NCBI GenBank assembly: GCA_973895155.1
Contig: OZ316898.1
Location: forward strand, 14,166,330-14,230,329
DNA from: Marsupella aquatica
Lineage: Eukaryota > Plantae > Marchantiophyta
Direction of reading: 5' to 3'
DNA length: 64,000 nucleotides
In this document: in pieces, positions 41,391 to 63,508 of the stretch
Position numbering within the stretch: the stretch's first letter is position 1
Layout of the letters: every line of letters begins with the position of its first letter
The notes under the pieces: model-generated
What the model saw: the letters and a program-made list of their open reading frames with translations, nothing else
Databases searched by the model: none
What the model was told of the DNA's origin: nothing
Translations under genes and position numbers: made by a program

Positions 41391-42421
41391 CCCTGGGCCC
41401 TCACTCTTACTATATTAAGTGAACCCCCCTGAGAACAAACACCCCCCGTGTACCCCTTCTTAATATTTTTGTTCACAAAAGAAATCCCATTGTTAATGTA
41501 AAAATATTAACTTTTCCTATTAAATTTTATCCTTTTGTAAATTATAATAGAGTTTTTCAAGGAATTGAAAACACCCTTGAATTTTTAGAATTACAAATAT
41601 CATATTGAAATAGATAAAACTTTATCTTTCATAGGGGACTTGTATGTTATGCTCGATCTTCAAGGTACATATTTTATATATAGATAAATAAAATTAGTAC
41701 GAGAGAAAATTATAGTTCTTCCTATAGTTTACACATAGCCATGCACTCTTGTCTTAGTGTTCGCAAAAGTGCCTCTAAATTTCTAGTTTCATAAGTACTA
41801 TATATGTATAATCCAGGAATAATACTCCAAAGTCTGAACCAACTATAACAAACATTGTTGAGCGCCTGAGACCCCTCCCTCAACACACAAACACATCTGG
41901 CCTCATACCTGGTTGTTTGATTCAAGGGAATTCAAAAGTAATCTTGTCCTTCCATGTGGGATTGATCCATGGATCCCCATCAATCCTAGTTTCCCAACCA
42001 AGTTGGGCCCAAAGATTCTGGCCCAACATTTACTCAACTCCCCAGTTAACTCCTAAACATGCGGGTAAACATGTCTACCCAAACCCATTTGTTCCACCAT
42101 AAGGGGACCAACGAAACCAAACTTGCCTTAAGACAATAAATAATTAAATGTTTGATTTACTATATGGACACGTGTGCAAATGAAGTGATGACATGTGTGC
42201 CAACCATATAGTGACGCGTGTACTTGGCATTTTGGGTACCCTTGCATAAGATTTATGTCACATGTATTGATAAGAGTCTTATTACTAATATTGTGGCGAA
42301 TGTATATAGAGGGATATTGCCTACTTTAAAAACTATTATAAAAATTAGTTTGCATTACATTAAAAATACCCTTGCGTTGTTCGCACGTCCTCCCTGTATT
42401 AGTAACACTAAGGGCCCAGGG
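41391..42421 (+). mobile_element. 1.03-kb non-autonomous element, CCCTGGGCCCT-TIR family
   Basis: TIR CCCTGGGCCCT; perfect 8-bp TSD CAGGATAC (41383-41390, 42422-42429). Confidence 0.9.
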
Positions 42422-42780: not shown

Positions 42781-42888
42781 CTCGGGGGGGTCACTTTCCT
42801 CAAAAGTGCCACATCATGTGCGACGAAGTATAGGGCCATTTAATTGGGTTCGGTGGAAGACTTCCAAAGATTTGTGGAAGAACAACAG
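42781..42888 (+). mobile_element. Left part of a CTCGGGGG-family MITE interrupted by the Sola-like element; continues at ~62684-62735
   Basis: Homologous to 7749-7860. The sequence after 62683 (..CTTTAAAGAACAATAGGC..) matches the continuation seen at ~7860-7910. Confidence 0.75.
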
Positions 42889-43156
42889 AACCCCAATTTA
42901 AGGAAAACCGAACTTTGGAAATTCCGAAAATCACTAAATATTATTATTTTAATAAAAAGGGGGCGACATGACGCGTGGCTGCGCGTGAAACCCTAAAAAT
43001 AACTGCAACGTCACATTTTAACCAATCCAACTTGACGGGACCAAGAGACATGCTCACGCGAATAATAATAACAAAGAAATAAATCTTTGAGATCCTTTAT
43101 ATATGATAACCAGTATATAAGGAGTTTACAAATGGTTTCTAGAACGACAATACAAA

Positions 43157-43900
43157 TTAATCTGATCTCATGCCGACTATTATTTTGGAAGCGTCCAAAA
43201 TTGGGCATCTGTTAAATTGCTCTACTAGATATCTATCTCCATGCCTCTGAATCACAGGGTCTTCCCATAGAGTATGATTATAATCATAATCTCTAAAAAT
43301 AGATTTAACTGACCAATCAGGATAATCTCTTCCATTGGCAATAACAAGCGGCTCACAAGAGTTTGCTAGCTTGCTAAGATACGGAATCAACAAGTTAATC
43401 AGGAAACTGTCGTCGACCGACCCAAAATATTTGGGCGGAAATAATGATCCAATAACAGGATCTAAACAAGCATGAAATGCATCGGATTCGATAAACATTA
43501 TATTTTGCTGCAAATACGCCTTCATATAAATTCCAACCTTCTCAAAACACTTCAAAAATATCCACTTATTTGATGTCACCCCATCGCATAAGTAACAATG
43601 AGACTAATCCCAAATATACTTAAATGAGGCCATTTCCATCGCAGTAAAAATAGATGCTAAAATCTGATCTAAAAGGTTCTTCCCAAGAGAGGACCAGATC
43701 CCTACATCGAAATTCTCAAAATAGAATCTCAAGAATTCGTGAAGATGAGGCCTTGGAAAAATGTATATATTCCCAATCCAAATTCCAGTTGAGACCGCCA
43801 TCAGTTGGGAACGCGGTGCAGTGTAACAGAGTAGATGCTCCACGTCTAAAACTAGAGCCCATTTTCTCTGCTGCAATGAATCTCCTATAGAGAAACACAA
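43157..43900 (-). pseudogene. FCP1/NIF-like HAD phosphatase domain, copy 3 (catalytic motif degenerate; internal stop)
   Basis: ALVLDVEHLL...IFPRPHLHEFL..FENFDVGIWSS...YIWD*...FLKCFEKV...NIMFIES. Confidence 0.7.
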
Positions 43901-44099
43901 GAAGATGCATGAGCCCGTATGGATGTAGTCACACGAATGGTCGCGTCACATATTACAGAGAAAACATCCTCTACACTCTGGCCATTGATAAGTGACGTCT
44001 GTTGAAGTGCTTGATAAGAACTTGATCCGCATGTCTCTGCACGTGCAGATGCTCCCATATATCCTCGTTCAGATCCCAATCTCAATGTAGATTTCTAAT

Positions 44100-44677
44100 C
44101 GACCAGATGGGATAATCGAACTTGTTAGCGAACGCAAGACAAAGCCCTAAATTTGATAGCTTTCATAAATATGGAATGAGGTCATCCCTAAAAAAGACAT
44201 CATCCAATGATCCTTGAAACGACTTAGCGAACAATAATCCGCATACAGCTGTCTGGCATGTATGGGAAGGACAGGCATCAATCTGGATTATATTCTCTGG
44301 TCGATAATCTTGAAACATATCACGTAGTCTCTCGATAGATTTGAAGACAACAGTCTTATAATTTTTCTTCACATAACCAAGATTTCAGCAATGATCCTGC
44401 GTGAACACATATATCAGTTGCGACAGGTCGGTGCTCGACAACACTTCTGAAAGTATCTGATAAACCAGTTTATCATCGAGAATAGACCAGACCATCACAT
44501 CAAAATGATCATAACAGAATTTTATAAGATCATGAAGATGCGGCCTCGGAATGACACATAGAGATCCGATACGAATTCCGGGTGTCGACTGAGCTGAGGA
44601 GTATATTTTGAAACAGAGCACAGGAAGTTTTCCAGTCCTAAAACTAGAAGTTGACGCAACCTGCTCCACTTAGACAC
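44100..44677 (-). pseudogene. FCP1/NIF-like HAD domain, copy 2 (frameshift and stop)
   Basis: LLVLGLENFLC / IPRPHLHDLIKFCYDHFDVMVWS...FTQDHC*...VFKSIERL...PENIIQIDACP. Confidence 0.7.
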
Positions 44678-44808
44678 CTGCAAATGAACAATTCGATTAT
44701 CATATTATGCAATTGCAAACAACCACGCGACCGGGCGCGTCACTCCCAAAATATAAAGTTCAATTTCAATCAATTTATAAATAATAATTGATAATAAACA
44801 ATAAACGT

Positions 44809-45714
44809 TTACTTATTGGACTTATCCCGGGCTTCTATAGCACGGTCTTTTTCTGCAGATAAGTATTTCATAAATTCGTCAAACTTTTCTAAATGGTCTT
44901 TATTCCCCTGATTACGAATGATCACATTTCTCCTCCAAAGATTCGTCTTATCAATATAATCTTTCTCAAGATTTTCTTGAGAGAACGTTGGAATCCCATA
45001 TCCACGAAGGAGCTCGCGGAATGTCAACTTGTCAATTGACATGTCGCATAGATATGGATATAGTTTCTTTCTAAAAAATAGGTCATCATCGAGCCCAGAA
45101 TATGCATCGGGATACAACGATGAATAGAAGTCATTAAGACTCGTCTTATATGCAGCGTCATCGATAAGAATGACATTCTCGATGTTGTAATCTTTAATAT
45201 CGGCGGCAATGTCGGAGAGACATTTGACAAATAAGGGGATGTCATTATTATTCTTCCCTATAAGTCGAGTTGATTCTTGTCCCCATATAAATTTAATACG
45301 TTTCAAAACTTTGGGTCGAAGTATCAGCCTTACACAAGATAGAATATTCCATTTGAACATGCACGACCAGATCGCAATGTTGTATAGATCTGCCACCTTC
45401 TCAAGAAATTCCATTAAATCAGGCCTTGGATAGATAACCTTGTGCATCTGTCTCATACCCCTTGACCGAATGGGCATCCCAGGGATGATCTTCTCTGACC
45501 AGATAAGTACCCGATTCAGATCGAAAATTACAAGTCTCTTCTGAACCGATGACTTCTTTGCCGATGGATTAGGCGCCATCTGTACCTGTGATTTTTGTGC
45601 CGCAGGGTTTGCAGAACGTACTAGAACTGTCTGTTTGTTTCCCGCCTCCGGACGATCACCAAACTTCCGGACTGGTGCCTTCGATACTCGATCGGGGGGT
45701 TTCAGGATAGGCTT
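44809..45714 (-). CDS. FCP1/NIF-like HAD phosphatase domain, copy 1; spliced in frame to the Ulp1 exon
   Basis: KRLVIFDLNRVL...PRPDLMEFLE...YNIAIWS...FIWGQE...VKCLS...ENVILIDDAAYKT; the frame is open from the splice acceptor at 45715. Confidence 0.8.
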   Translation of the reverse strand, partial: KPILKPPDRVSKAPVRKFGDRPEAGNKQTVLVRSANPAAQKSQVQMAPNPSAKKSSVQKRLVIFDLNRVLIWSEKIIPGMPIRSRGMRQMHKVIYPRPDLMEFLEKVADLYNIAIWSCMFKWNILSCVRLILRPKVLKRIKFIWGQESTRLIGKNNNDIPLFVKCLSDIAADIKDYNIENVILIDDAAYKTSLNDFYSSLYPDAYSGLDDDLFFRKKLYPYLCDMSIDKLTFRELLRGYGIPTFSQENLEKDYIDKTNLWRRNVIIRNQGNKDHLEKFDEFMKYLSAEKDRAIEARDKSNK

Positions 45715-45800
45715 CTGTAAAACATTAAGAAATGAAAATAAGTTTATAACGCGAACAATCGCGTGACTACAAAGAGAGACACTGAAATGAAGTGTATTAC

Positions 45801-46535
45801 CTGTACAAGACGGTCGTTCAGTGCTGGAATTCCTCCGGAAATGTCAATCATAGCAGCACGGATCCCGGTAACTAGGTTACTTGCGGACGTCGGCTTGCGG
45901 AAGTCCATGTCAAATAACGACAAGACTATCTCCCTACGGAATTTCTCAATTTGATCCGCGGCAAAATTAATTTTGTTTCCTTGACACAAGCACTTGGCGT
46001 ATCTCAAGATAAACACACCACAACTGTGGCCGTCACTCTGGTGAGGAATATCATTCCGATATATCCGTTCCCAACCTGAGAGATCCAAGTTGACACCAGT
46101 TCTCCAGCCAATTTTGTCGGCGTAGTACTTCCCAACAATATCTAGCACCCTAGGATTTTGTCGATTATGAACTAGAGAATCTAGGTACTCCAGCCGTTTC
46201 TCCTTCGGATACACAACTACCAATGACCAATGTTCTTTCACAGCATTGTGTACTGGAAAGACCAGTTTGTCGTATTGACTGATTTTTAGCGAAAACTCCT
46301 TTGTCCAAGCTGCTCTCTCCTCGTCGAAAATGGTAGGATCCATGGAGAGAAGCTCAAAATGGTGTGTTTGAAAGAATTTGACAAGGTCTGACTTTCCAAC
46401 TCTATCGAGAATCAGTTCGAGAAAACTCAAATAAGCGTTAATTATATCATCGGTGAGCAACTCGCGCGGTCTCAGACACATCATATGTTTCCTCTTGATC
46501 GAGTGTTGTAAGAACTTGGTCAATAGCTCTTCCAT
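45801..46535 (-). CDS. Ulp1/SENP-family (peptidase C48) ubiquitin-like protease
   Basis: LTDDIINAYL, FPVH...HWSLVV, YLDSL and PHQSDGHSCGVF give an intact His-Asp-Cys triad and oxyanion Gln. Confidence 0.92.
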
Positions 46536-46722
46536 ATCCTTAGAAGGATCAAGACATTGATCTATTCAACTAGCCAAATTTTCAAAAAACTGCAAAAAAC
46601 AGAGATTTCAGTATGCCTTCAAATAACGTACTGAGGTTGTAGCCTAAGGGTTCTACCTCAGAAAACAGAAACAATAACAAATCAATAATAAAATAATGAC
46701 GTCTATAATAGAAACTTTAAGC

Positions 46723-48422
46723 TTATAGCTTGCGAATGACCTTTGGATTGGGTGGATCCGGCCTTTTCGCAGTTGATCTCTTGGGTGCCTCAATCGCAAC
46801 AACATCCTTCAGCCCTCCTCGAGACCGCAGTGATCGCTCCACCGGACCAGTTTGCGAAGGTTGGAGCGATGAGGCGGGAAGACCTTCAAATGGTTGTGGC
46901 ATTTGATTGAAATATTCCACAATCTGGGAATCCGATTCCAAAATATCCGGTGCCACAATTTCTGCGCGAGTGACCTCTGCAATATATCGGGGTCGAGACC
47001 ACGAACCCGGTCGCGTCAAGTCAGCTGTTAGTCTCTTAACGACTTGAGCCAAGTCTGGTGCCAAAGACGTTCCCAGGTCTTGCACTCGATTCTCGGAAAA
47101 GCGGACATTATTGATGATTGTCTCCATTTTGGATGCAGTGGCAGTCTTCTCCTCGGTAATCAAAAGACCCTTCCAATATTGCAAAGCAAGGACTACCTGG
47201 ACTCGGAGCTGCTCCGGTGAATATTTATTCCAATCATCCAACGAGACCGTACTTAAGGGTGGATCGTTAAATTCAAACTCCGGGCGAAGAAAATAGTCTA
47301 ATATTTTCTTCTTAACTGCAACTGAGGGTGAAGAAGGCTTCTTCAAATTCAGCCTTATTTTTGGTAGACATTGTGCCTCGGGAATAAGCAAAAGATCCTT
47401 GGCCCTCTCGGCCTCCTTCCTCGCTGCCTCCAGTCTTGCGGCTTCTTCTCTCTCCGGTCTTGCGGAATCGACCTTTTCCGCCTCCAACTTCTCCACCTCC
47501 ACCCTCTCCGGTCTTGCGGTCTCGTCCGCCATCCTCTCGGCCAGCAACCTCTCAGCCGCCACACTCTCCGCCTTGGCCCTATTTGCCTCTGTCACTAAAA
47601 GGACTCTCACAGCCTGGGCTTTCTCAGCCTGGGCTTTCTCAGCCTGGGCTTTCTCAGCCTGGGCTTTCTTAGCCTCGGCTTTCTCAGCCTCGGCTTTTTC
47701 AGCCTCCGCGTTCTCAGCCTCCGCGTTCTCAGCCTCCGCTTTCTCAGCCTCGGCTTTCTCGGCCTGGGCTTTCTCAGCCTCAGCTTTCTCCTTCTTCTTC
47801 GCGGCAGTTGCTTTTCTAGCTGCTGCCTTTTTCTTCTTAGCCTCCTTCTTTTGAAGCTCCTCTTGCCGGGCCGCCTTTTGCCGGGCCGCCTCTTGCTGGG
47901 CCGCCTCCTCTCTGGCCTCCTCCTGCCGGGCCGCCTCCTTCTTTTAAAGCTCCTCTTGCCGGGCCGCCTCCTTCTTTTGAAGCTCCTCTTGTCGGGCCGC
48001 CTCCTGCCGGGCCGCCTCCTGCCGGGCCACCTCCTGCCTGGCCGCCTCCTGCCGGGCCTCCTCCAGCCGGGCCTCCTCCAGCCGGGCCTCCTCCTGCCAG
48101 ACCGCCTCCTCTTTGGCCTCCTCCTGCCGGGCCGCCTCCTCTCGGTCCACCTCATGTCGAGGCTCTTGTGTGGCCTCTTCATCAAAGTCCTCAGCGTCCT
48201 CAGAACCCTCCATCTCCTCGTCCTCTTCATCAGCGTCCTCAGCGTCCTTCATCTCCTCTCCGTCACTCTCTTCATCTCCTCTATTGTCGGAATCTCCATC
48301 CACTTCTTGAATGTTTCGTCCTCCATTGTAAAGAGAAACGGAGCCAATTCTCCAAATTTCATCATTTCGTTCTTCCCCATTTGAGCCCATGGGCAAACAA
48401 AACTCGTAGCTCTCATAAATAC
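46723..48422 (-). pseudogene. Acidic and charged coiled-coil linker region of the cargo protein (EAARQ and AEKAQ/E pentapeptide repeats), frameshifted
   Basis: 15-bp tandem repeats at ~47610-48140; ORFs 47944-48447 and 46723-47610. Confidence 0.6.
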
Positions 48423-48521
48423 CTGAAAAACAATGGAAACATGACAATTCTAAGCTTGACTTGACCGTTCGCGTGACAAAAGTTTAAACGATAATGTGAT
48501 CGAAGAGGGTTATTTATATAC

Positions 48522-51038
48522 CTTCGAATTTGGATGACAATAATGTGATCCAGGCCGCCCAAATGAGTTCCAGATATTACGACACTGTCGTACAATGGTG
48601 AGAAACTGTCCTTCTTCCATTGATGTTTGATGACAGTGGTTCAGAGCTTTCGATAATCCCATCAAATGAACATTATTGTCGTTGTTGAGCGTTGCCCAAA
48701 ACATTACAGCTTCTACAGTACCGCAAGCATCTCGTACAACTTGGCTGACTTTGTCGTCCTCTTTCAGCAATTTGTACACCATTATTGTGTGCTGGCCTCC
48801 GAGTATCCAGAAATGACTGGTCATAATGTCCTCGTCCTTTGGCGCCGAATCGTAGGGCGCCCCATTGTAGTCGGGATCTCTGTCGGCCTCCGACTGAACC
48901 CACTTCACAAGGACTAAAAAGCAGCATCGCTTTTCGAACTTTATAGCCGAATGAGAGAGGAGTGAATTCTTTAGCCTATCTGTGTAATCCTGATTCCACT
49001 CTCGGCACTTGATGTGGTCCGGTGCAAGATGACAACGTGATGTCTCAACAAAAAATGACTTGTTGTTAAATATATTCACAGCACTATATTCTTTGAGGAA
49101 AGAATCGAATAGAGCCCCGACATTCGCTGAGGTAATTACTTTCGGAAGATTCTCCGCCGAGTATACTTCAACCTTGCTCACTGGCGGGGCCTTTCCCAAG
49201 CGAAATCCCTGGTTGAAAGGAACTCTCTGGAACTCAAGTACGTCAATAATGTATTGACAAATCAAATCCCCTGGGCCCTCAGCGTTACTAATGCAAGGAG
49301 GACGTGCGAACAACGCAAGGGTATTTTTAATGTAATGCAAACTAATTTTTATAATGTTTTTTAAAGTAGGCAACATCCATGTATATACATTCATCACAAT
49401 ATTAGTAATAAGGCTCTTATCAAATACATGTCACATTAATCTTATGCAAGGGTACCTAAAATGCCAAGGACACATGTCACTATATGGTTGGCACACATGT
49501 CATCACTTCATTGGCACACATGTCCATATAGTAAATCAGACATTTAATTATTTATCCTCTTAAGGCAAGTTTGGTTTCATGGGCTTGCATGGTAGACTTG
49601 TTTACCTGCATGTGTTAAGTAAATGTTGGGCCAGGATTTTGGGGCCCAACTCATTTGGGGTTCTGGGATTGATGGGGACCCATGAATCAATCCCACATAG
49701 ACAAACAAGATTACTTTTGAATTCCCTCGAATCAAATGGCCAGGTATGAGGCCAGGTGTGTTTGTGTGTGGGTTGGTGTACTCCCTTGATCATTGGGTTG
49801 GGGGTGGTACCCGGTGCTCACAGTTGTTTGATTGCAGAGATGGCAGGAAAATTACCCACCATGTCTAAGTAACAATTTCAGCCAAAGGAGATTTGATGGT
49901 ATTACTCTCCACAATTTTCAGTAGTCATTTTTTGTATTATTAGTACTTTGTGTCTAGAATATATATGATTAATGTGTGGTTTGATGTGTCAAGTTGCATG
50001 AAAGAAGTTGCCAAAAACTCTACTTATCATTTGGTGTTAATGGTTGATGTCATACCATTCTTAGTCAAGATAGAATAATTTAGCAATTGGAGTTTACATA
50101 AATAGTATATATGCAATTATTCCTCCAAGGATATAGCATAGCATAATAATGCCTTTGTACTAGTTCAGTTTATCTCTATGAGGTCTACAAGTTGCCTGAG
50201 TTATAGTCATATACTCTAGGAAGAACTATAAATCTTTAGTACTAATTTTGTTATGATCTATATAAAATATGTACCGTGAACATCAGCGTAACATAATATT
50301 TCCCTATGCAAAATAGAATCTTTTATGGTTCAGTATGATATTTACAATTTTTAAAAATTCAAGGGTTTTTTTAATTTCTTGAAAAACTCTGTTATAATTT
50401 ACAAAAGGATAAATTTTTATAGGAAAAAATAATGTTTTTACATTAACAATGGATTTTTTTTTGTGAACAAAAATATTAAGAAGGGGTACACGGGGGGTGT
50501 CTGTTCTCAGGGGGGTTCACTTAATATAGTAAGAGTGAGGGCCTAGGGATCAAATCTCCCGTTGATCCCTCTGGATCGGAAGGATATCCCACACTAGTAA
50601 CCTTTTCCAAGGCGTGCCTTGCACCTAGAAGATCATCGATTCTGGGCTGATTGAAGGTTACATATTGCGTTTGATCCAAACAAATGCTTATTTTGTCCTC
50701 CTGCTGGTCGTCGCTGACTAGCAGAACCAACACTCTTTAACTTTCATGTTCTTCTCAAAGAAACACCCGAGAATTTGTGATCTCTCCAAAACTGTAGCTT
50801 TATCATTTTTTGCCACCACAAGATGACAGCGCCATTGCGAACGACTATTCCAAAATTGGATATCTCAGTCGATTCAAAGAGATGGATACTCTTTGTCTCC
50901 GTTGTTCTCTCTCTGATTGACTTTCCTCGATATGCAAGTATGGATGTCTCCGCGGGAGTCATTTTTGTCTTGGCTTTCTTACGAGAAGCAGCTTTAGACG
51001 AGTCTCTTTTCTACTTTGAAGTTCCGGTAGGATCCATT
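48522..51038 (-). pseudogene. ParB/Sulfiredoxin-like (DGQHR-type) domain exon, interrupted by a MITE
   Basis: CREWNQDYTDRLKNSL...FWILGGQHTIM...ALN. Removing 49269-50548 and one TSD restores GSTGDLI|CQYIID in frame. Confidence 0.6.
49269..50548 (-). mobile_element. 1.28-kb non-autonomous element, CCCTGGGCCCT-TIR family; inverted relative to 41391-42421
   Basis: Perfect 8-bp TSD ATCAAATC (49261-49268, 50549-50556); both ends homologous to the 41391 copy. Confidence 0.92.
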
Positions 51039-51112
51039 CTGAAACAGACAAATATTGAAAGTTAAACGTTTATTATAAAATACTAACACGCGCATGGTCG
51101 CGTCATGCCGAA

Positions 51113-51679
51113 TTACATTTTAGGAACGTTTATCCTGACCCAATCTTCTCGCTCATCTTCATCTAACCAAAACCAAAGGTTCCTAAATGTGTCAAGTTCA
51201 GATCCTTCAAATCCACCCAGAATGTCCAGCGGCGGGAGAGTTCTGATGGATTCTGTAAATCTTAATGCGACACTCCGTGAAGTCAAATGCCTTCGAAGCG
51301 ATTCATATCCTGGTCTATCAGTGAAGTCATAAGCTACCAAGGTGACCGTCGCCCAAGTACTACTATAAGTAACTATGTGGCACCACTTCTTACTGACTGT
51401 TCGAATGGTGATCAAGTCCATGACCCGATTTTTAATCGCAGTATCCGACAAATTCCCAAGACAATGGAAAAACTCTTTGACTAATGGCCAAATATATTTC
51501 TCGACAATATCGTTCGGAAGACCGGGTATCAGGTCTTCAACTTGACTCCATATCATGTTTCGGTTGATAACCTTTGCACGTGCAATGCGCTCCATCATCA
51601 TTTGACGATGAGATTTTTGATTCATGTCAAAGGATTGCAGCATAATATGGAAAAGATTAAGAACAAGAACTGGGACCAC
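51113..51679 (-). CDS. F-box-like protein/exon 3
   Basis: LIPGLPNDIVEKYIWP...IRTVSKKWCHIV....W. Confidence 0.7.
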   Translation of the reverse strand: MVPVLVLNLFHIMLQSFDMNQKSHRQMMMERIARAKVINRNMIWSQVEDLIPGLPNDIVEKYIWPLVKEFFHCLGNLSDTAIKNRVMDLITIRTVSKKWCHIVTYSSTWATVTLVAYDFTDRPGYESLRRHLTSRSVALRFTESIRTLPPLDILGGFEGSELDTFRNLWFWLDEDEREDWVRINVPKM

Positions 51680-51824
51680 CTAGATTCTGAGAAAATCTAC
51701 CAAACCTTTCGATTAGAACATCTCGTTCTTCCTCATCTAAATTGTTATATTTGTTCATAATCAATGTGATTTCGTCATAAGTAGTAGTCCCAAGAACAGA
51801 TATTTCTGGAAGCATAGAAATATC

Positions 51825-52229
51825 CTATCGAATAACTAGACAGACTGAGTCAAACTCCAACTCGTTAGTTTTGGGTATGTCGTAAAGAGCTTCATTTGCG
51901 ACATCAACAATCCGGTTTGCTTGTTTGAGCATATCCCATAACCTTGTATTTGTAACTAAAAATTTCCACTTCTTGCTACAAGCTCCAAGCCGAATAAGGT
52001 CTCGGACCCTATCGATAACCAAATCGTTATCGAGGTGTCGATATCCACGCAATCTTTCAATTGAAATAAAGTGTTCGTAGAGTATTGGCCAAATGTTTGA
52101 AATGACCAAAACATCTGGTATTTCTCCAATGAGACTAGAGGAGGTTTCATCCAGCGTATCCCATATTGTTTTCTGTTTCCTTTCATGAGATGAAAGGAAA
52201 TCTCGAGCCTCATTCAAAAGTTGGCTCAT
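51825..52229 (-). CDS. F-box-like protein/exon 2
   Basis: LIGEIPDVLVISNIWP...LGACSKKWKFLV....LW. Confidence 0.65.
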   Translation of the reverse strand: MSQLLNEARDFLSSHERKQKTIWDTLDETSSSLIGEIPDVLVISNIWPILYEHFISIERLRGYRHLDNDLVIDRVRDLIRLGACSKKWKFLVTNTRLWDMLKQANRIVDVANEALYDIPKTNELEFDSVCLVIR

Positions 52230-52294
52230 CCTGCTTTTATCATATCACAAAACATTGTTAGAAGACATACGACGCGCTTGGTCACGTAAGTTAA

Positions 52295-52846
52295 CTAGAA
52301 TTCCTTAAAAGCGTAGATGTCACCCTCAAGGTATCCAACTTCGTGGCATCTGACTGTAAATTTCCATTTTTCAAGACGGTGAAGAGCATCGTAAGTCTTC
52401 GTGAAGAGTTCCCTAAGATCTCTGGACATTGACCCCATGAATTTAATTCTTGGGTATTTCTGGAAGAAACTTTGAACTGTCGATGAGAGAGACTCATTTC
52501 CGATCGGTTTAGTAGGATTTCGTGGGAAAGCCAAATCTAATAAACTCAACTTGATTACACCCAGAAGATAGGTATTCCCAACAAGGTGACACCATCTGCG
52601 ACACACCGAAGATAGTCCTACAAACTCATCCAATTCCTTTATTGAGAAATTTCCTGCATTAGCCGAGGAATTAAAAGTCTCCTTGATCCGAGGCCATATC
52701 AATTCCGCAACAATGAAATCTGGAAGTCCAGGTAGTAGTGTTTCAACAAATACAGAATATCCCGCCAGTAGACCATCTTGGCTTCTGTCCAAAACATCAA
52801 ATATTGGGCATAGATATCTGAAGCTCTCCAGACCAGGTTCGCCCAT
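52295..52846 (-). CDS. F-box-like protein/exon 1
   Basis: LLPGLPDFIVAELIWP...LSSVCRRWCHLV. Confidence 0.7.
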   Translation of the reverse strand: MGEPGLESFRYLCPIFDVLDRSQDGLLAGYSVFVETLLPGLPDFIVAELIWPRIKETFNSSANAGNFSIKELDEFVGLSSVCRRWCHLVGNTYLLGVIKLSLLDLAFPRNPTKPIGNESLSSTVQSFFQKYPRIKFMGSMSRDLRELFTKTYDALHRLEKWKFTVRCHEVGYLEGDIYAFKEF

Positions 52847-52984
52847 GACTCTTTTTAGCCAAATGATATATCCCAGAGATTATTTTCACACGACTGGTTG
52901 CGTCTACAAATCAGAATGTATAAACAATTCTTTGAGAGACTGATTTTTTCGGGTCACAACGTGACAAATCATAAATGTTGCTTC

Positions 52985-53550
52985 GTCCTCTAACAGAACC
53001 AGTCAATGAGAGAGCTACCTCAGACGCGAATGGTCACGTCAACTGCTCCTAAATGAAACCTTACCTCCTCTAACAGAACCAGTCAATGAGAGATCTACCT
53101 CAGACGCGACTAGTCACGTCAACTGGTTCTAAAAGGAACCTTACCTCCTCTAACATAACCATTCAATGAGAGAGCTACCTCAGACGCGACTGGTCGCGTC
53201 AACTGAACCTAAACAACTATATCCATTGAACCTTCCTTGTGGATATTTGGATATGGTATGCGCTCAATAAATCTATCCAGTTTCCTTCTCACACGCGACT
53301 GGTCGCGTCAACTGGTCCTAAAAGGAACCTTACCTCCTCTAACAGAACCAGTCAATGAGAGAGCTACCTCAAACGCGACTGGTCGCGTCAACTGAACCTA
53401 AACAACTATATCCATTGAACCTTCCTTGCGGAGATTTGGATATGGTACGCGCTCAGTAAATCTATCCAGTTTCCTTCTCACACGCGACTGGTCGCGTCAA
53501 CTGGTCATAAAAGGAACCTCACAATATTTTCACGCGACTGGTCGCATCAA
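52985..53550. repeat. Tandem array (~76-bp and ~100-bp modules), each carrying the ACGCGACTGGTCGCGT palindrome
   Basis: CCTCTAACAGAACCAGTCAATGAGAGAGCTACCTCAGACGCGA... four times; about 7 palindrome copies. Confidence 0.9.
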
Positions 53551-56169
53551 CAGCTCAAACAACTTTTGGACACTAGGATAATACAGTGATAAAACTATGA
53601 TTACTGACCCGTACGGACAAGGAAATCCGAGTAAGCATGATTTCATTCATTTGTATTCATTCATGAACTTTACAATAATTCAGATGTTTGAGCTCTGTCA
53701 TTGTGAAACTATTATATATCAGAAGTTTAGAGAACGATTCAGCTAAGATGATTCAATTTAGCAGTCTACTGGTTGTATTCATCAATTAAAGGATTCAGTG
53801 TAATGAGATTCACATAACATGAGAGTTTATATGATTAAATTCACAGCGTGCAAGTTTGTAATGAGTTTGTAATGAGTTTGTAATGAGTTTGTATGATTCA
53901 CACATATTTGAGTTTACAAACAAACCGCATTATGAAAACTCAGCTTAACAATCAAGAGAAATTTTAGCAAACAACAATCAACACCAACAGAAAATATAGA
54001 AATTGCACCTGAATTCTAAAAATTTGATGTAATCGTCTGAGAGATTGACCAAGCACTTGAAGACCTTGCTGCGGCATTCCAGAAAGTAAATATAAGATTG
54101 AAGATAATAATATGCTAAGCAACAACAACACAGCTTCTATACTTCTATACATAGAGCTTCGCTGCCACCAATTGAATAACATGTACTTAATGCTAAGGAA
54201 CTCATTATGTCGAGTTAAAAAGACTCTTTCAGAAGTACAATCAAAGCTATGGATAGGCAAACTGAGCATGAATAAAAGCGCACTAAACCTAAAGATTCAA
54301 AGAGGTGAAACAAACCTGAATGCTGAATGGAAGGAGCTGAAACAAGCTGCCAAATAGTAGTTCGAGCTGCTGAAACACGTTGATCGAGCTGATATGAGCT
54401 TAAAATTGGCTGACATGAGCTGATACGAGCACTCCCAAAAAACTAGCTGCAACGAATCCAACGGGCTCCTAAGAATCCCTTCGAGCAAACTAGAAGTGAA
54501 TACAAGCTGTAAATGCAAGCTGCAACGCGCCAACGAGCTCTGGTCGAAACGATCGACAACTACTAAGAGCTGCAACGCGCCGACAAGCACCTGACCACAA
54601 CGAACAAGCTGCAACGACAAAAATGAAATCCAGGGCAGGAGCAAGAGCGACGAGAGCGAGAGTGAGAGCGACGAGAGCAGGCGCACGAAAGTCTAGGGAG
54701 CGAGAAACAACAACAATGAACAGTGAACTCAAGACCGTGGGCGCCAACACTAAGGAAGGACTAATTAGGGTATTGTTTTAGCATAACCCTAATAACAGCC
54801 TAGCGACAGGAAGATTCCAGATGATCTCCGTACACTCCACCATCGACTCAAAAAACTATGCAATCGTGAAAAAACGATTACCGGATTCCTTTTGATTTGC
54901 CGTACTAAAGGAGATTTCTATTTGATCGCCAATTTGAAATTTAAACCGGTAATTATGCAACTGCAAAAGATTGTTAGTGGGGACCCCCGGATCCGGATCC
55001 GGATCTGTATCTTCACTATATCTGCCAATTCAATTTAAAATGTCAACGAACGACAACTTTCTCACAATCGTTCCATCACGTAATGGAGGCAAACTTCAAA
55101 ATCATTCCATTTTGGTAGTGGAGACCGTTGGATCCGTACTCCACTCTCTATCTTGCCAATTCAAACCCATACTCTAAACAACGTAAAACGATTCTCACGG
55201 TCGGGGAGAACCGATATTCAAAATCAATCCTGTACAATGATTCTCACAACTGGAGACTCAACCAATTTTCAAAATCAAAATCGAGTCTAGATGAACACAT
55301 CCTTCATGGAGTCAATAGACAGATCTCATTGCTCACGGATCATTCCTCATTTTTAGTTTCTCCTGACCAGGATACTAGCTGGGCTCTCAGCGGAGGCTGA
55401 TCCAAGGCACATTTGAGGTGGAGCAGATTGGATCATTCGACTATTCCAGTCGGAGGCGGAGCTCAATCAAGCAACACTGGCGCAGTTCTTGTTGTATCAC
55501 CTTCAATCTTGGGGAGAGCACATCCGATCAAGCGGGAGAGTTGCGACGAAGTGAGATGACAAACATTTAGAACCTCCATAGTCTGCCTCATTCATCGAAG
55601 CATACTAGCGGACCAACAAAGAGCGGATATTCTGAAATCACTGTCTGGTCGAGGATTTTGATCTTGATACGATCAACAAGTTGTCATTCTCTGGTGGTGC
55701 GATTCGGTCACGATACTCAAGGAAATTGGAGTTCGAAGGAGGAGGCTTAGTTGGTTGGGACGAGGAGGCTACGCTGGAAGGAAGAGGTTTGGCTGGGAGG
55801 AGGGTTTCCACCAACATCGGAGGGTTGCCACCAACATTGCTGAGACCACACGCAACTGAATAACTTGTAAGTATCAATCAACATTAATTCCGCAATAAAT
55901 GAGGAGAGTAGTTGCCTTAAATCACGCCTTCAATGCATGAATTGACTCAATGAAGTTATGGTCCAATTTCTCACTCCAATTTTGATCAATCCGTGTTTCA
56001 AGTCCAATACAGAAGCAATGTATCAGAAGTACTAGTAGAGGATCCAAATGAATTCTCTAGTCTAAAATTGTATGGCGTTCAAGTCTAGTTGTCCGTACAT
56101 TTTGCTATTGTTTATTATAGTTGACGGCCTAGCAAAACGAAACGTAATCGAGGTCCATTTTTCAGATCA

Positions 56170-56830
56170 GACTGCTCTCAACTTGTTAGTAGGATGACAT
56201 GATTTTTTGGTTACACATGTAGTTCGTCACGCGCACAGTCGCGTGAACCAATTTATCTCGTGTCTTTTGATATTGTTTATTGTAGTCCACAGCCTAGCGA
56301 ATTGGCCAGCAATCTATTTTAAAAGCAACGTCTTCGGTTTATCACGCGCACGGTCGCGTTAATGTTTTCGAGGTCAGCAAAAGCTCTGCACTCTTAGACG
56401 TAATCGCCCTTTATTTCTTAGATCTTCCTGATCTCAACTTGTTAGTAGGATGACCTGTTTTTCAGTTACACATGTAGTTCGTTACGCGCACAGTCGCGTG
56501 AACCAATTTATCTTGTGTCTTTTGATATTGTTTATTGTAGTCAACAGCCTAGCGAATTGGCCAGCAATCTATTTTAAAATCGAGGTCTGCGTTTCATCAC
56601 GCGACCGGTCACGTTAATGTTTTAGAGGTCAGCAAAAGCTCTGCACTCTTAGACGTAAATACCCTTTATTTCTCAGATCTGCCTGATCTCAACTTGTTAG
56701 TAGGATGACCTGTTTTTGGTTACACATGTAGTTCATCACGCGCACAGTCGCGTGAACCAATTTATCTCAGGTCTTTTTGATATTGTTTATTATAGTCGAC
56801 AGCCTAGCGAATTGTCAGTCAGAGGAATCT
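56170..56830. repeat. ~255-bp tandem repeat (about 2.5 copies) with two palindrome copies per unit
   Basis: TCTCAACTTGTTAGTAGGATGAC...CACGCGCACAGTCGCGTGAACCAATTTATCT recurs three times. Confidence 0.9.
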
Positions 56831-57060
56831 CGATTTTTCCTTGATTGCAAAAATGGTTACATCAATCCCGAAGGACTTTGGATGTGGAATCCATATCCAC
56901 TAGCACTATCCAGGAATTTAACTGACCTGGTCTTTCGAACACTATTTTCCACGGGACGAAATTAAGCTACACAGTATCTATAACAAGTTCTAACTTGAAC
57001 TACTCTTGAATCTGTAGTTCTAATCTTTGACTACTCAAAATATTGTTGACTTCGATCGAG

Positions 57061-57432
57061 TCAGTCATTCCAAGATGAAGGCATCCACTCATCGGTGTCT
57101 GGTGTGGATTCCCTTGAATCCAGAAATTCTTTCTTTGCCCAAGTCTTAACGTCCATAGATTTTCTCGGCTTGCTCTTTCTGTAATACAAATCAGAATCTT
57201 CGTTCATCTCTAATTGCCTTTTCTTCGGTGCGTCCACTTTCTTGGCCTCCTTCTTGACTGTCTTAGCGTCTGCTGCTGCTTCCCCCGAAATGGATTCGAC
57301 GCATGCTCTGGCCTTCAACTTCTCCCCCCTCGAAACAGATTCCACGAGGGCTTTGCCCTTTAACTTCTCCCCTGATGCCATCTTTGTAGTCATCTCTGTC
57401 GGATTGGTCTCCATCTGATCTTCCATCGACAA
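57061..57432 (-). CDS. Small charged hypothetical ORF in the Sola-like element
   Basis: 123-aa K/E-rich ORF with an internal duplication (GEKLK.KA/RA.VES.S); TATA-like sequence ~300 bp upstream on the minus strand. Confidence 0.35.
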   Translation of the reverse strand: MSMEDQMETNPTEMTTKMASGEKLKGKALVESVSRGEKLKARACVESISGEAAADAKTVKKEAKKVDAPKKRQLEMNEDSDLYYRKSKPRKSMDVKTWAKKEFLDSRESTPDTDEWMPSSWND

Positions 57433-57914
57433 ATATGGCGAACAATGTCGTCTCTCCTAAAACATTTGACCCGATTTAGTCACCATAAACATTATATTAC
57501 ATCGCTGACACATTCTGTAAGGAGTACCATGAATTCGATACGTCGAACCTTCTGAAACATCCGTCGGAACATCCTCATTCTTTGAGCTCAGCGGAGTAGT
57601 CATCGCCCTTCAAACAAGAGATGCGGACCGAGACTAAGAATTGGAAATGAGAGAGCTGATGTGCGAATAGATTATCCAGTAGCCAGAAAGTGGAATGCGT
57701 GGGGGAATGAGCAATAGGGATCATCTCAATGCTTTATACTGTTTAGTCTCCACTAGACAGTCATTGTACATAGTGGTTTCTAGAAGAGAGTGCGCGTTTG
57801 ACTGGCGCGTATTAGAATTGGCGGGAAGTTCAGTTGTCCTTTAATTATGGCTTTAATTTCACGTTTGGCGACCGCCCCGGGAATACTGATTGCTAGTGAA
57901 GTACTAAGATCTTA

Positions 57915-58745
57915 TGAGGGTCAGTAGTTACTGACTGTCCGGTGTTCACTCATTGGTAAACTGGTACTGTCCACTCATTTTTTCTGAGTGGAGTTGAAAT
58001 GATTGTTTGTAATTGATTGTAGTCGTTCTCATTCACTTGAAATGACTGACGGACCATGCATAATCTGTTACCGGTATGTGTGATGCCTTTAGATCCGTAA
58101 TTGTATCTTCTTGTCTCACGCGCAATTGTATCTTACTTATGAAGTACCAAGTACGAGCTAGAGTTTGGGCCTAGCCTTCTAGCTTCTATGTCGTAGACCC
58201 TGTTATCCCTACACCCTCTGACTAAGGTCACGCGACATGCCTTTAGATCCATAATTGTATCTTCCTGTCTCACGTGCAATCATATCTTACTTATGAAGTA
58301 CCAAGTACGAGCTAGAGTTTGGGCCTAGCCTTCTAGCTTCTACGTCGTAGACCCTGTTATCCCTACACCCTCTGACTAAGGTCACGCAACTAGTCACGTG
58401 CAGGGCAGTGCATTGACTATATTCTGCCTACTTATTGACGGTCGTGATAGGACAATGCAGTTCATGGACATTTTACTGGCACTTATTAGCATTACTGTCC
58501 TCAGTAGTTACTGACTGTCCACTCATTTATTCTGAGTGGATGTGAAATGATTGATCGTAATCGATTGTGGTCGTTCTCATTCATTTGAAATGACTGACGG
58601 ACCATGCATAGTCTGTTGCCGGTATGTGTGGTACCTCTAGGGTCACGCGACCAGTCGCGTGCAGCGCAGTGCATTGACTACATTCTGCTTATTGACCAAC
58701 GTGACAGGACAGTGCAGTGAAATTGACGGACGTGACAGGACTGTA
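57915..58745. repeat. Duplicated blocks (~165 bp x2, flanked by a ~150-bp x2 block) upstream of the transposase, with palindrome copies
   Basis: 58086-58235 repeats at ~58238-58390; TCAGTAGTTACTGACTGTCC blocks at ~57921 and ~58501; TCACGCGACCAGTCGCGTG at ~58643. Confidence 0.85.
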
Positions 58746-58787
58746 TGCTTACAGTGATATTCTCTGATGTGCAGGATCATAATTATT

Positions 58788-61700
58788 ATGGTGACATCTA
58801 CAGTCTGGATCAGGGAAGGCAAACACGTTATTATAGGCATACGTGAGAAACAGGTTGGAAAAGGTCGCGTGATAAGTCTTGATCCTTCCAGGGTTTGTCA
58901 CAATGTTCCTCTTGGGGCGGACAAAGTTCTTCTTCTATTGGAGGAAGTTTTTGACGAGACCATTCTATGCAAAGATGGCAAACTTTTGAAGGACATGATT
59001 GGGGGTTACCTTGTATGGGAAAGGAATCAGCTTTTTCGAGCTCCCATGGAATCGGAGGATGTGTTTGGCACTGTTGGTGATGATCAAGATCCAGTCAATC
59101 AAAATTCTGATGGGAACAACCATAATGAGAGTCGGTCTGGTGTGGAAGTAGTTTTACCAAAGGCCTTGTGGATGGGCATGCCTGTAAAGGTGGTGGATGA
59201 GAACAAGTTGATTTTTGCAGTGGCAACTATACATGTTCTAGATCCTATAGTCAAGCTTGGGGATGTCACCCTTGGGAATACACATGTGGGAATTCTGATC
59301 AACAATTTTGTCGAGGGAGCTACCATAGATCATCTGAAGCATAGAGATTGCTTAAAAGCTTGGTCGATGGACCAACTCATTGCCAAGGATGGCAACTTGT
59401 TGTCTTTCCACAACATCAGGCAAGCTGTGGGAGGGAACACATCTCCAACAAGTGGCAAGCGGTCCTACGTCCATAAAAGTAGGAAAAGAAAGAGTCCATC
59501 TTCCCAGACATCTAGAAGAGACACATCTTTGGCACGTCAAGATGTGTTGTTGATAAACACTAAGGACTGTTGTAGTGAACATTGTTGCCAATATTTGGAC
59601 CGCAACTTGGCTATGGCAATTAGGCAAAAGTGGTGGTCAAAATCTTTTGCGGAGCGCAAGGAGGAGGAAATCAAGGCTATTAAAAATACAATACACTTGG
59701 GTACTGGAGAAAGGATTCTAGCAGTGGAGGGCAAAGTATTGTGCTTGGAGGCATGGAGAATCATTCATTCAAGAGGAAAGACTCAATTTTATGCCTTGAA
59801 GAAGACTGTGATGGCTGGAATGAACATAGGTACCCATGGTAATGCTGGAAAAAGGCGTATGTCCGAGAAAGTATCTCAAGCGTTCATGTCAATGAAAGAG
59901 ATTATTGAGGAGGCAGCTGATCATCATCCAGCCAAGTTGAGAACCATGGCAGATAATACAAGGATGGTTTTGAGGGAATTGCCAACAAATCTTACTTGGG
60001 AGAATATTAGAAACAGGGTTAATATTGTCAACCAGGAGGCTGGTCTTCCTCCAATTTCCCAACCCACCTTGAGTCATCTACATCAGATGTATTTCAGGGA
60101 GTTCTCACGTCACAAAAAGGGCAACAACTTTTCAAAGTGTACAACTTGTAGTGAGTTGCTTCAACGGAAAGCAAACCTTACAAGAGCTAAGGAAGAGTTA
60201 GAGGGCCTAAGGCGTGACGAGGAGGAACATCACCAAGACCACACACAGCAAAGAATGTGCTATCATACCTGGAGATATGAGTCCATCCATCGTCCAAAGG
60301 AAGTGTTATGCCTTATTCACATGATAAGATGGATCATTCAAAGACAGCTCTCCCAAGAATGCCCTTCAATCCTAAGCATGTGGATGGTGCCCAAAAGTTC
60401 CCAATTACTGTCACTGGTATCCTTACTCATGGTCATGGTCCCAAGGCCATAGCCCAATATCATGTTGGAGTGTGGCCAGGTGATGTCAACATCACTATTG
60501 GGTCAATTGATTCAATACTAAGGATGTTGGAAAACCCAAATCCAATGATCAAATCACTTGTGGAGGGGCCAGACTCGACAAGTCTTTTTAAAGACCTCCT
60601 TTTTGGGAGAGCAGATATCTTGGAGGCAAGTGTCCCTAGAGCATTTGAGGATGACATTGCCTACATCTCAAGCCTAGGTACTTTACTCACAATCCTTTAA
60701 TTTATTATTATTTAATAATATAAGCTCACACACACTGACACTCTACTTTGTGTAGTTGTTGCTCCTCCTAGTCAAGGTTTCATTAATAGGGTTTAAACCC
60801 TAAACCCTAAATTGGGGTTTAGGGTCTGACTAGGGTTTTATTTAAAAGCATTCTGAGATTGTTACATTGTGATGCAGCACCTGAGGCACCAAAGTTCAGG
60901 CCCCTTCCACGAGTATTGAAGCTACAACTGGATAATTGTGCCTCAGACAACAAGAACAGATATATGATGGCTTATTTGTCATTGTTGACGGCAAGGGAGG
61001 TGTTTGAAGAGGTTCATCTTGGTTTTATGGTGGTTGGGCATACTCATGAGGACGTTGACGGTATGTTTGGGCATTTTTCAGAGTCTATGATGCATAACCC
61101 CACATACTCATTGCCTGAGTTAATGTCCTTGTTCATGAGAGCAAGGACACCCAATGCAGTCCCACATTTTCTACAGGAGGTCCCAGATTTCAAAAACTAC
61201 TTAGCTCCATTCATGTTGAAGGGCCCTAAGGCATTGGTGGGGCATTTAAAACCCAGGCTGTTTAGGTTCTATGTTCGTCATGATAGTATGCCATGCTTCC
61301 AATACAAAATGAAGTCAACTGATCAGGGATGGTTACCCAAGGAAGGTATTGAAATGTGGTCATGGAAAGATGACAAAAGTCCTCACATCCCAATTGGGGT
61401 GCCCAAACGGCTACCAATGATGGAGTTGAAAATGCTTCCTGAAGTGCTGACAGGGTTGAAGAAGCATGTGTCATTCTTTGAGTTTATTCTAAAGCGAACA
61501 AAAGAGGAAGAACCAAAGCGACGTTGGACAACTCTCATCAATTATTGGAATGACATTGTAGATACTCTACAGGGTGAGCAGGTGCAATATGAACCTGAAG
61601 GTGCACACAACTTGGAATATGGGTTTTGGCCTTTATCAATATGGAGAGAGCACGTTCCACCAGAATATCGAAATGTGGCATGTGAGTTGGAGGCAACAGT

Positions 61701-62173
61701 GGATTATGTGGGACCAGCAAAAGATAAACCTCCTGAGAGTTTTAACCCTAGGGTTGATGTTGTGAAGGGCTATTATGTGTTGGTACGGCCGGACGACTCA
61801 GACCTGGATGTTTATCCCGTCCATATGGGGTTAGTTGTTACAGATGTCAGTGGTAGAAGGACCAGTGAATGAACAAAACCTTCTTCTTACTCATGTATGT
61901 GGTGTTGAGTGGTTTAGACCATTTATGGCAAAGAAGCAACGTGGTCAATCAGACTGGCAGCCAAGAGAGCGGTGGGCAGATTCTTGGGATAAGAAATGGG
62001 AACGTGATCCAACTCCAATATACAAGGAAGCTGAGACAATAGATGTTTCCTCTGCCTTGTGGTGTTTCAAAGCACGTAAAGGACCAGTGACAGGGCTGGT
62101 AGGAATTCCAAAGAATGTTGCTGTCAAGGCAAGAGACTATCTCTTGACATGCATAGCAAGTGACAAATCCTAG
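58788..62173 (+). pseudogene. Sola1-type DDD transposase with two N-terminal Tnp1/En/Spm-like domains; intron ~60678-60877; frameshifts near 60320 and 61850
   Basis: CCSEHC, CLEAW, HGN, FSKCTTC, HDKMDHSKT, LQLDNCASDNKN, FMVVGHTHEDVDGMF. Confidence 0.8.
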
Positions 62174-63294
62174 ACAGTAATGAAGCATGTAGTTTAGCAT
62201 ACAGTTTAAAAGGCAACTCAGAATAGTAGTAGCCAGAGAACTCAAGTTTAGACAAGTCTTATCGTCTAAGTTAGTTAGTTGGTTAGTTTATTTAAGATAT
62301 AATATTAGTTAGTGGGGCCTTAGTTTGGTGATATTAAGGCATGATATTATTGACATTCAAATGAATGTCCAGTAGACATTGTAATATACAACAATCATAT
62401 TAATTGTTGTAAAGGGTGGTCAATCTTTTTTGTATTCAACCCTATAGTAATTAAATAGACAATTGAAACAATGAATGACAGTTTAATTAAGGATTTGTGC
62501 ATGGATCAAGAGGTACTTGATGTCATTTAGTGATGCATTGTTATAAAGATCTTGCAACAAAACATTTGAAGTTTTTGACTATCCCACCAAATGTTAAAGA
62601 GGTTGATCATTCATTAACTTATAATATTTAGATAAAATGAGAATTAATCTAATACTTTAGTATTCCTTAAATTGGGGTTATAGTGTTCGTTTTAATTGTT
62701 GGGCCGCTTTAAAGAACAATAGGCATTTATTAAATGGGATATATTCCACAGAAGATGTCCATATAAGTTAGGTTTGCTCGCATTAGTCAGTATATACCCT
62801 CCCTTTATACATGTCTTCCCTCTAGATTTTAAATATAAGATGTGAGACTCAACGGAATGGTGAACTACAATTCAGTTCTGTTGCTTCTTTGTATGCTTGC
62901 TCATCCTATTGATGGTGTTCATCGCATTATATATTTGACTCTGACCCTGGGGCATTGTTCTTTTTATACGCAGGCTAGTACTCAATGGAATGAAAACAAT
63001 TCACCTCTGATAAGAGCTATGTGCTCCATATTATGAATTTGCATTGATACTTTTGCTTTGTTCATGTTTGATCACAGGGTCAGCAGACGGCCAGCCCGGC
63101 ATGGGCCCCGACCCAGGAGTTCACCTTTCAAGGGAGTTACACACTATAAGAGGACAGGGAGATGGGAAGCACACATTTGGTGAGATGTGGTTCAAACTTT
63201 CGTAAAAAATGGTTCTAACTGATGCTAAAATCGTCAGCATAAGACTGAGTTTTGTAAGCAATGTTTTACTTCGATCACTTAAAGAGCTTGCTCT

Positions 63295-63508
63295 ACTATT
63301 TTATTGAGAATGACACGGCAGCCTTACCGTCTTCTAGTCTTTCGTTATAGTAGCGTAGTAATCTAGATCTTAGCTAGACATCAATCAGGTCATCACTTGC
63401 TCGACTATTTTATTGAGAATGACACTGCAACCTTATCGTCTTCCGGTCTTTCGTTATAGTAGCGTTGTACTCTAGATCTTAGCCAGAAATCGATCAGGTC
63501 ATCACTTC
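63295..63508 (+). repeat. ~110-bp tandem duplication
   Basis: ACTATTTTATTGAGAATGACAC...ATCAGGTCATCACTT twice. Confidence 0.85.

Follow-up and report, generated by a model that had tools for sequence, protein, structure and literature searches.

In Arabidopsis, the VANC21 motifs of the transposon VANDAL21 are located in introns and in upstream tandem repeats, and their binding by a protein of the element leads to a loss of methylation (Hosaka et al. 2017, PMC5735166). The motif has been defined as YAGTATTAY (PMC5735166; Sasaki et al. 2023, PMC10398659). Transposases can also act as sequence-specific activators (bioRxiv 10.64898/2026.08.24.746577). In red and brown algae, ParB-like accessory proteins were proposed in 2025 to bind the inverted-repeat arrays of their own element (bioRxiv 10.1101/2025.02.11.637652; PMC12477816), and Sola1-1_Ec32 of Ectocarpus is a 21.5-kb Sola1 element with a ParB-like accessory gene opposite the transposase gene (PMC12477816). 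A literature search yielded no paper on this cassette in liverworts or other land plants. Here, a stretch of 64,000 nt from Marsupella aquatica (GCA_973895155.1, contig OZ316898.1, 14,166,330-14,230,329 of the forward strand), referred to as the window, was analysed for a CpG-rich palindrome that recurs in a candidate transposon of ~19.8 kb (42880-62688). The candidate element comprises minus-strand cargo genes, three palindrome arrays and a plus-strand gene for a DUF7869 transposase. We consider it probable that the palindrome is the family-specific docking site of this large transposon, where it would be read by an element-encoded protein and serve self-directed regulation. The design is real and conserved, and similar designs have already been described in algae and Arabidopsis.

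With VANC21 and VANDAL21 the locus shares a short, family-private motif that is confined to non-coding DNA (introns and regions upstream of genes), is amplified in tandem and differs among related families. The two systems differ in that the motif is an 18-20-bp palindrome here and a 9-bp oriented motif in VANDAL21, and that the transposase is of the DUF7869 type here and of the Mutator type there; no VANC homologue was found among the window ORFs (open reading frames) in Pfam scans of the larger ORFs. Binding and demethylation have been shown for VANC21, whereas the sites described here are known from sequence.

The consensus of the palindrome is (T)CACGCGAC-NN-GTCGCGTG(A), with an invariant core of ACGCG-N6-CGCGT and flanks that are usually TC...GA. 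When up to one mismatch was allowed, CGCGAC-NN-GTCGCG matched nine times in the window as against 0.03 expected matches, and none of 100 shuffled sequences reached nine. When up to four mismatches in 16 positions were allowed, CACGCGAC-NN-GTCGCGTG matched 22 times, as against a mean of 0.6 and a maximum of 2 in shuffled sequences. All 22 matches were located at 42,960-58,661, and none was found in the other 48 kb of the window (1-42,959 and 58,662-64,000). The confinement to the element that the original prediction had described thus holds within the window. All motif positions given there were likewise recovered, i.e. the solitary copies at 42971, 44725, 45749, 48459, 51088, 52272 and 52888 and the three arrays, and one solitary copy at 43931 was added to them. 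A match at 47000, with four mismatches and within an ORF, was weak and was treated as a probable chance match. These results support a motif that is private to the element within the window and seated in its non-coding parts, namely arrays, introns and spacers. Among the core CpGs of the window palindromes, 76 of 88 were intact, and 11 of the 12 losses were TG/CA transitions, which look like deamination of methylated CpG.

Copy numbers in arrays 1 and 2 also agreed with those predicted. Array 1 (52986-53550) is located directly upstream of the minus-strand cargo genes and holds seven palindromes (53024-53547) in units of 80, 109 and 189 bp. Array 2 (56157-56814) holds five palindromes (56229-56753) of the variant ACGCGCACAGTCGCGT, arranged in 255-bp units with two sites per unit. 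Array 3 (57966-58745) consists of 154-bp and 127-bp repeats with two full palindromes (58384 and 58645) and half-sites at 58117 and 58230; the acceptor and ATG of the transposase gene follow ~110 nt beyond its end. Cross-comparison showed that the repeat units of the three arrays are unrelated and that the palindrome is the only sequence they share, indicating that the motif itself recurs and is not the passenger of one duplicated unit.

To these results, other genomic copies of the element could be added from DNA contigs of four sequencing runs, which derive from two studies and two organisms. The cargo region proved to be a high-copy repeat, and other copies restored the motif at positions where the window copy deviates. 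At 48461-48462 they showed GC instead of TT, which gives ACGCGAC, while A was replaced by G at 52890 and T by C at 52899; the latter two changes together give a perfect motif at the 52888 site. The family therefore appears to maintain the motif at these solitary positions. A check for the motif in other family copies had been suggested with the original prediction, and it was found to be kept at the same places, including the intron site 48461-48462. The observed/expected ratio of CpG was 0.8-1.2 in the motif-bearing part (43-58.8 kb) and fell to 0.18-0.32 over the transposase gene; the remainder of the window had a value of 0.53. The drop coincides exactly with the end of the motif at the start of the transposase gene, within which no copy of the palindrome was found and CpG content is very low. 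Relatives from the leafy liverwort Calypogeia fissa showed the same direction, with ratios of 0.74-1.07 in arrays and 0.48-0.50 in transposase genes. The contrast is compatible with local protection from methylation, without being proof of it.

Within the cargo, solitary palindromes are spaced roughly 0.8-1.3 kb apart. All cargo genes are encoded on the minus strand. Three tandem F-box-like ORFs at 51113-52846 (52295-52846, 51825-52229 and 51113-51679), which gave weak Pfam F-box matches below the curated cut-off, are followed by a ParB-like exon (48522-51038) and a remnant of the second exon of this gene, comprising ~41 codons (48291-48422), which was detected by tblastn with the second-exon products of two relatives, L004 and L005. 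An Ulp1/C48 protease exon (45801-46535; Pfam PF02902, E 1.4e-20) and three NIF/CTD-phosphatase-like units at 43157-45714 (NIF-A 44809-45714, NIF-B 44385-44677 and NIF-C 43157-43884; Pfam PF03031) complete the cargo, and a charged low-complexity stretch lies between the ParB-like and Ulp1 exons in cargo order. Pfam scans of all larger ORFs revealed, besides the DUF7869 transposase, only Ulp1, NIF and F-box-like domains. Introns and gene models were read from the sequence, and exons were handled one by one.

The outermost solitary copy (42971-42986, ACGCG-N6-CGCGT) lies downstream of the last cargo ORF and is separated from the candidate left end by ~90 bp. At the other side of the cargo, a copy with two decayed CpGs (52888-52903) precedes the first cargo ATG (52846) by 41 nt, and a further copy (52272-52287) lies in a 65-nt spacer from the stop codon of F-box-like ORF 1 to the ATG of ORF 2, a spacer that may be intergenic rather than an intron. 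Five copies (43931, 44725, 45749, 48459 and 51088) were found to lie within segments of 72-135 nt that start with GT and end with a polypyrimidine tract and AG. The original prediction likewise placed five copies inside short GT-AG introns, and two of the introns found here are well supported by the sequence. The first is a 99-nt intron after the ParB-like exon (48423-48521) with a decayed copy at 48459-48474; this intron and both exon borders are conserved in the relatives L003, L004 and L005 (KW[KG]/GT ... AG/x[FY]M[RK]A..VCPWA, the slash marking the border). The second is an 86-nt GT-AG intron between the Ulp1 and NIF-A exons (45715-45800; copy at 45749-45764; donor CAG/GTAATA, acceptor TTTTACAG/), which joins the Ulp1 frame in phase to 45 more open codons leading into the NIF-A ORF. 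The candidate intron 43885-43956, upstream of the NIF-C exon, contains a copy with one decayed CpG (43931-43946). A candidate 135-nt intron between NIF-A and NIF-B (44678-44812) contains the copy at 44725-44740, but the decayed window copy of the element shows no clean reading frame across the junction. A 77-nt GT-AG segment (51040-51116) harbours the copy at 51088-51103, which lies 49 nt before the acceptor. The ParB-like ATG (51038) follows this acceptor immediately, and L003 showed the same arrangement. If this segment were spliced out, the third F-box-like ORF would be in frame with the ParB-like ATG. As a side observation, the two in-phase connections, from Ulp1 to NIF-A and from the third F-box-like ORF to the ParB-like gene, suggest that the cargo may be one long or alternatively spliced gene instead of separate genes.

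The five intron copies are located 34-49 nt upstream of the acceptor AG, and a perfect copy could fold into a GC-rich stem of 7-8 bp. Both features would be expected if the palindromes were RNA hairpins in pre-mRNA introns, located just upstream of the branch-point region and acting in splicing control or feeding small-RNA pathways. However, three of four candidate introns folded no better than shuffled sequences (z +1.4, +0.8 and +0.25; the fourth -2.7), it is the exact sequence and not mere pairing that recurs at unrelated sites, and most copies are located in arrays outside ORFs. The near-constant distance to the acceptor is probably explained by the free space that is left in a ~100-nt intron after donor, branch point and pyrimidine tract. 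A role as RNA hairpin is hence hardly credible. An Rfam search of 42-63 kb revealed no family.

To the window could be compared four further DUF7869 transposase loci (L001, L002, L007 and L008) and four loci with a ParB-like cassette (L003-L006), each of which showed a family-specific palindrome of 16-18 bp. In L001, TCACGAACCATGGTTCGTGA occurs five times in an array ending ~300 bp before the transposase ATG, once in a transposase intron and once 3' of the gene. In L002, the near-identical CACGARCCATGGYTCGTG occurs 16 times upstream of the transposase gene and once in the same intron as in L001. L007, whose transposase is more distant, has ATCCTCGA-N-TCGAGGAT six times in the region upstream of this gene, and L008 carries 21 copies of ATCGGCGG-N-CCGCCGAT in an array and as scattered single sites. 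The arrays of L001, L002 and L007 are found at the same place as array 3 of the window, upstream of the transposase gene, and that of L008 lies ~8 kb upstream of it. Among the cassette loci, L003 retains a decayed palindrome of the L001/L002 type in the conserved intron that follows its ParB-like exon. L004 shows synteny with the window in the F-box-like, ParB-like, second-domain, Ulp1 and NIF parts, its ParB-like product is 58-61% identical, and the window's own motif is present upstream of the ParB-like ATG. L005, with a ParB-like product of 39% identity and a homologue of the F-box-like ORF (E 4e-5), carries three copies of ACGGGACAGTGTTCCGT, each 36-40 nt before an acceptor. In L006, where a NIF gene lies downstream of a distant ParB-like gene, TGGGGAG-NN-CTCCCCA occurs 65 times, both in arrays that flank the ParB-like gene on either side and between ORFs; NIF genes downstream of ParB-like genes were thus seen in both L004 and L006. 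Symmetric CpGs are present in five of the six palindrome types. The outer TCACG...CGTGA and an 8+2+8 geometry are common to the window motif and that of L001/L002, as expected if protein and site drift together.

This turnover of motifs also bears on the possibility of a host origin. The ACGCG/CGCGT in the motif and the position of arrays upstream of genes would suit sites of a host transcription factor (a CGCG-box or ACGCGT-type reader) that had been acquired as promoter or enhancer modules. One host factor cannot, however, explain a different palindrome in each related family (CGAACC, GGGACA, GGGGAG, TCCTCGA and GGCGG types), and no copy of the motif was found outside the element in the window, which makes a host reader very unlikely. 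A motif private to the element, together with own palindromes in the relatives, has instead the look of co-evolving docking sites for an element-encoded, probably dimeric protein. The predicted role of the palindromes as sites for such a protein is supported by the element-private motif, by the other copies and by the relatives' palindromes.

Two additional observations were made at the relatives' loci. Downstream of the L002 transposase, at 14254-18819, a second, unrelated palindrome (TTGTTAGCGAGCTCGCTAACAA) occurs five times among Pfam-negative minus-strand ORFs; they probably belong to an adjacent element that has a private palindrome too. In C. fissa, a Ty3/gypsy long terminal repeat retrotransposon (gag, RNase H and integrase with chromodomain) was found at 13600-18650 of L001, immediately downstream of the transposase locus; its presence limits statements on the 3' part of the L001 element.

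As to the protein that reads the sites, the original prediction had pointed to the ParB-like one as a possibility. The palindromes would then be parS-like loading sites on which this protein dimerises and perhaps spreads, marking the element as self. An AlphaFold model of the ParB-like exon (pLDDT, predicted local distance difference test, 77) was compared with known structures by VIA-align, which returned the N-terminal domains of ParB, Noc and KorB (Z 9.0-9.4, root-mean-square deviation 2.1-2.4 over ~90 residues). The top structural matches all belonged to the ParB/Srx N-terminal superfamily; searches of the exon sequence against Pfam, NCBIfam and PDB sequences gave no match, and only the fold comparison succeeded. 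Private palindromes were moreover present at all five ParB-like cassette loci examined, and algal ParB-like accessory genes adjoin inverted-repeat arrays to which self-binding has been proposed (bioRxiv 10.1101/2025.02.11.637652; PMC12477816). Nevertheless, the matches are limited to the N-terminal domain, which is followed by two helices in the modelled exon, and no parS-reading helix-turn-helix was seen in it by structure comparison. At the position of the arginine-rich CTP (cytidine triphosphate) box, GERRxR in ParB, model residues 154-158 read GGQHT in the window and GGQH[TS] in homologues, without arginines; this turn is closer to DndB/DUF262-type motifs. In the window copy the gene is broken by a stop after codon 8, a frameshift near 50822 and a nested insertion (alignment with P0001), and the second-exon domain, ~430 residues in relatives, is deleted except for the remnant. 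Finally, profile searches and tblastn of ~21 kb of context around each of L001, L002 and L008 detected neither a ParB-like gene nor any other cargo homologue, although arrays are present at these loci, with sites also in introns. These loci could be cassette-less derivatives that are served in trans, and L003, which comes from another sample, does combine a ParB-like gene with a palindrome of the L001/L002 type. On balance, the ParB-like protein as parS-like reader is unlikely in the form predicted.

The second-exon domain was also investigated in the relatives. The domains of L004 and L005 gave no match to Pfam, PDB sequences or the Atlas. Only a faint resemblance to a DPPY-type motif was seen, in the strings DLIFLDSTL and VDFFYFDGTI, and a reading as methylase was not confirmed here.

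In comparison with the algal elements Sola1-1_Ec32 and Plavaka PAG3 (red algae), the window shows the same arrangement of a ~20-kb element with a ParB-like N-terminal accessory gene opposite the transposase gene, with the reservation that cassette and transposase are assigned to one element on the strength of a terminal inverted pair that is itself tentative. Tandem inverted-repeat arrays adjoin the accessory gene in both systems (array 1 here, and both sides of the gene in L006). The present host differs in being a land plant of the liverwort type, the second domain is no recognisable methyltransferase or 2-oxoglutarate oxygenase, single sites are also found in nearly every cargo intron, and relatives without the cassette still carry arrays. 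With bacterial ParB-parS the locus has in common a multicopy palindrome of 16-18 bp and a protein with the ParB N-terminal fold; it differs in that no helix-turn-helix was detected, the arginine box is replaced and no ParA partner was seen, and in that the host is a eukaryote and the sites lie in introns and promoters. An extended version of the ParB-like scenario would have the ParB-like protein and the second domain load at the palindromes, cover the element from sites ~1 kb apart, bring the Ulp1, CTD-phosphatase-like and F-box-like proteins to element chromatin and keep cargo and promoter CpGs free of methylation. This would be a eukaryotic counterpart of ParB-parS and a self-addressed anti-silencing toolkit spread across several liverwort transposon superfamilies; we put it forward as speculation, and its chances are low.

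Since relatives without a ParB-like gene keep their arrays, the transposase is a competing candidate. Its gene (58788-62173, plus strand) consists of several ORF pieces with a DUF7869 core (Pfam PF25273, E 6.6e-37), and its product is 58-68% identical to C. fissa proteins. The N-terminus, modelled from a three-sequence alignment, reached a pLDDT of 35. For this region, Pfam matches at E up to 10 were noise, and a word-index protein search with residues 1-320 returned nothing. We infer that the N-terminal region of the transposase is at least as likely to be the reader as the protein of the ParB-like cassette. As a side observation, a palindromic stretch of AAACCCTAAACCCTAAATTGGGGTTTAGGG, a repeat of the telomere type (AACCCTA), was found in a transposase intron at 60780-60830; in relatives this intron holds a palindrome site, of which the window has a possible decayed remnant at ~60726. 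A short perfect run of AACCCTA repeats was also present at 32657-32683.

If the transposase were the reader, the sites might serve transposition only, as plain transposase-binding sites without any part in regulation or chromatin, comparable to the subterminal repeats of Ac or En/Spm. Consistent with this, arrays accompany a DUF7869 transposase gene in all five lineages seen, the distance of the L008 array from its transposase gene might place it near an element end, and one window site is that ~90 bp inside the candidate left end. On the other hand, all three window arrays are internal and none is near the candidate right end. Sites are spread evenly in cargo introns and occur also in transposase introns of relatives, a spread that end recognition does not need, and the arrays adjoin start codons and not both termini. 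Transposition as the only function is thus improbable. The TnpA motifs of En/Spm, 12 bp in length, are similarly repeated, private to their element and close to the promoter, their reader is derived from or part of the transposase, and the binding of inverted motif pairs by dimers resembles the palindrome found here. En/Spm belongs, however, to another superfamily and carries subterminal repeats instead of internal arrays and intron sites, and no tandem helix-turn-helix domain could be shown here.

Self-directed regulation fits better than end recognition alone, because arrays are located upstream of both gene sets, sites are spaced through the cargo and relatives carry sites in transposase introns. 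In the mechanism that we favour, the transposon would be a large cut-and-paste element with a DUF7869 transposase, and the palindrome would be the docking site of its family. The reader would be element-encoded and sequence-specific, and would probably bind as a dimer that places one subunit on each 8-bp half-site. Dense array sites immediately precede both the cargo genes and the divergent transposase gene, and single sites about every 1 kb occupy the only other non-coding DNA, i.e. the short cargo introns and spacers, so that one private address would cover the whole element. The most likely use would be transcriptional activation of cognate copies or their protection from silencing, in the manner of VANC proteins on VANDAL21 or of transposase-type regulators such as those of AtMu1 or TnpA; recruitment of the transposase to the sites would also be possible.

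Several points weigh against this interpretation. A DNA-binding domain was identified in no element protein by Pfam, structure comparison or sequence searches. The candidate ends of the element are formed by an inverted pair of 29 nt (42880-42908 and 62660-62688; 86% complementary, with a perfect 17-mer core), and no comparable terminal pair was found in relatives. No target-site duplication was found at the candidate ends 42880 and 62688, so the ends are tentative, and the cargo and transposase parts could be two elements of the same family arranged head to head. All copies examined are decayed, and the gene models derive from their sequence. The CpG contrast, finally, could reflect a different age or composition of the two parts and not protection.

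Further features of the window were noted outside this system. A foreign insertion of 1,288 bp (49261-50548) is nested in the ParB-like exon; it is not part of the system, contains no motif and has a CpG observed/expected ratio of 0.23. Contigs of three runs skipped it, with an overlap of 8 nt at the joint. A second copy of this non-coding 1.29-kb insertion was found in inverted orientation at 41391-42421, ~7 kb away, and read ends with many different flanks suggest that it is a high-copy element in its own right. An 88-bp tandem array at 39750-40510 abounds in another palindrome, centred on GGATCC (TGAATACCAAATGGGATCC...), and five occurrences of GGGATAC-N3-GTATCCC were noted at 28755-30163 and 40758; private palindromes may belong to other elements in the window as well. 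Two 24-bp tandem arrays (unit ATGGGAAAGTCCGATGC...) at 1599-1777 and 2626-2804, in opposite orientation and ~850 bp apart, look like paired repeat regions belonging to another element.

Should an element-encoded protein bind the sites, the locus would offer a compact land-plant model of how a transposon distinguishes copies of itself from other genomic DNA. The address is long and unambiguous and is changed in relatives, which would make the co-evolution of protein and site directly readable. The locus also bears on the question raised by the algal elements, whether ParB-like accessory proteins of transposons bind their own element; arrays in relatives without a ParB-like gene make the transposase a rival and turn this into a binding question with two proteins. 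The step in CpG between the motif-bearing part and the motif-free transposase gene yields a prediction that can be tested on a methylation map.

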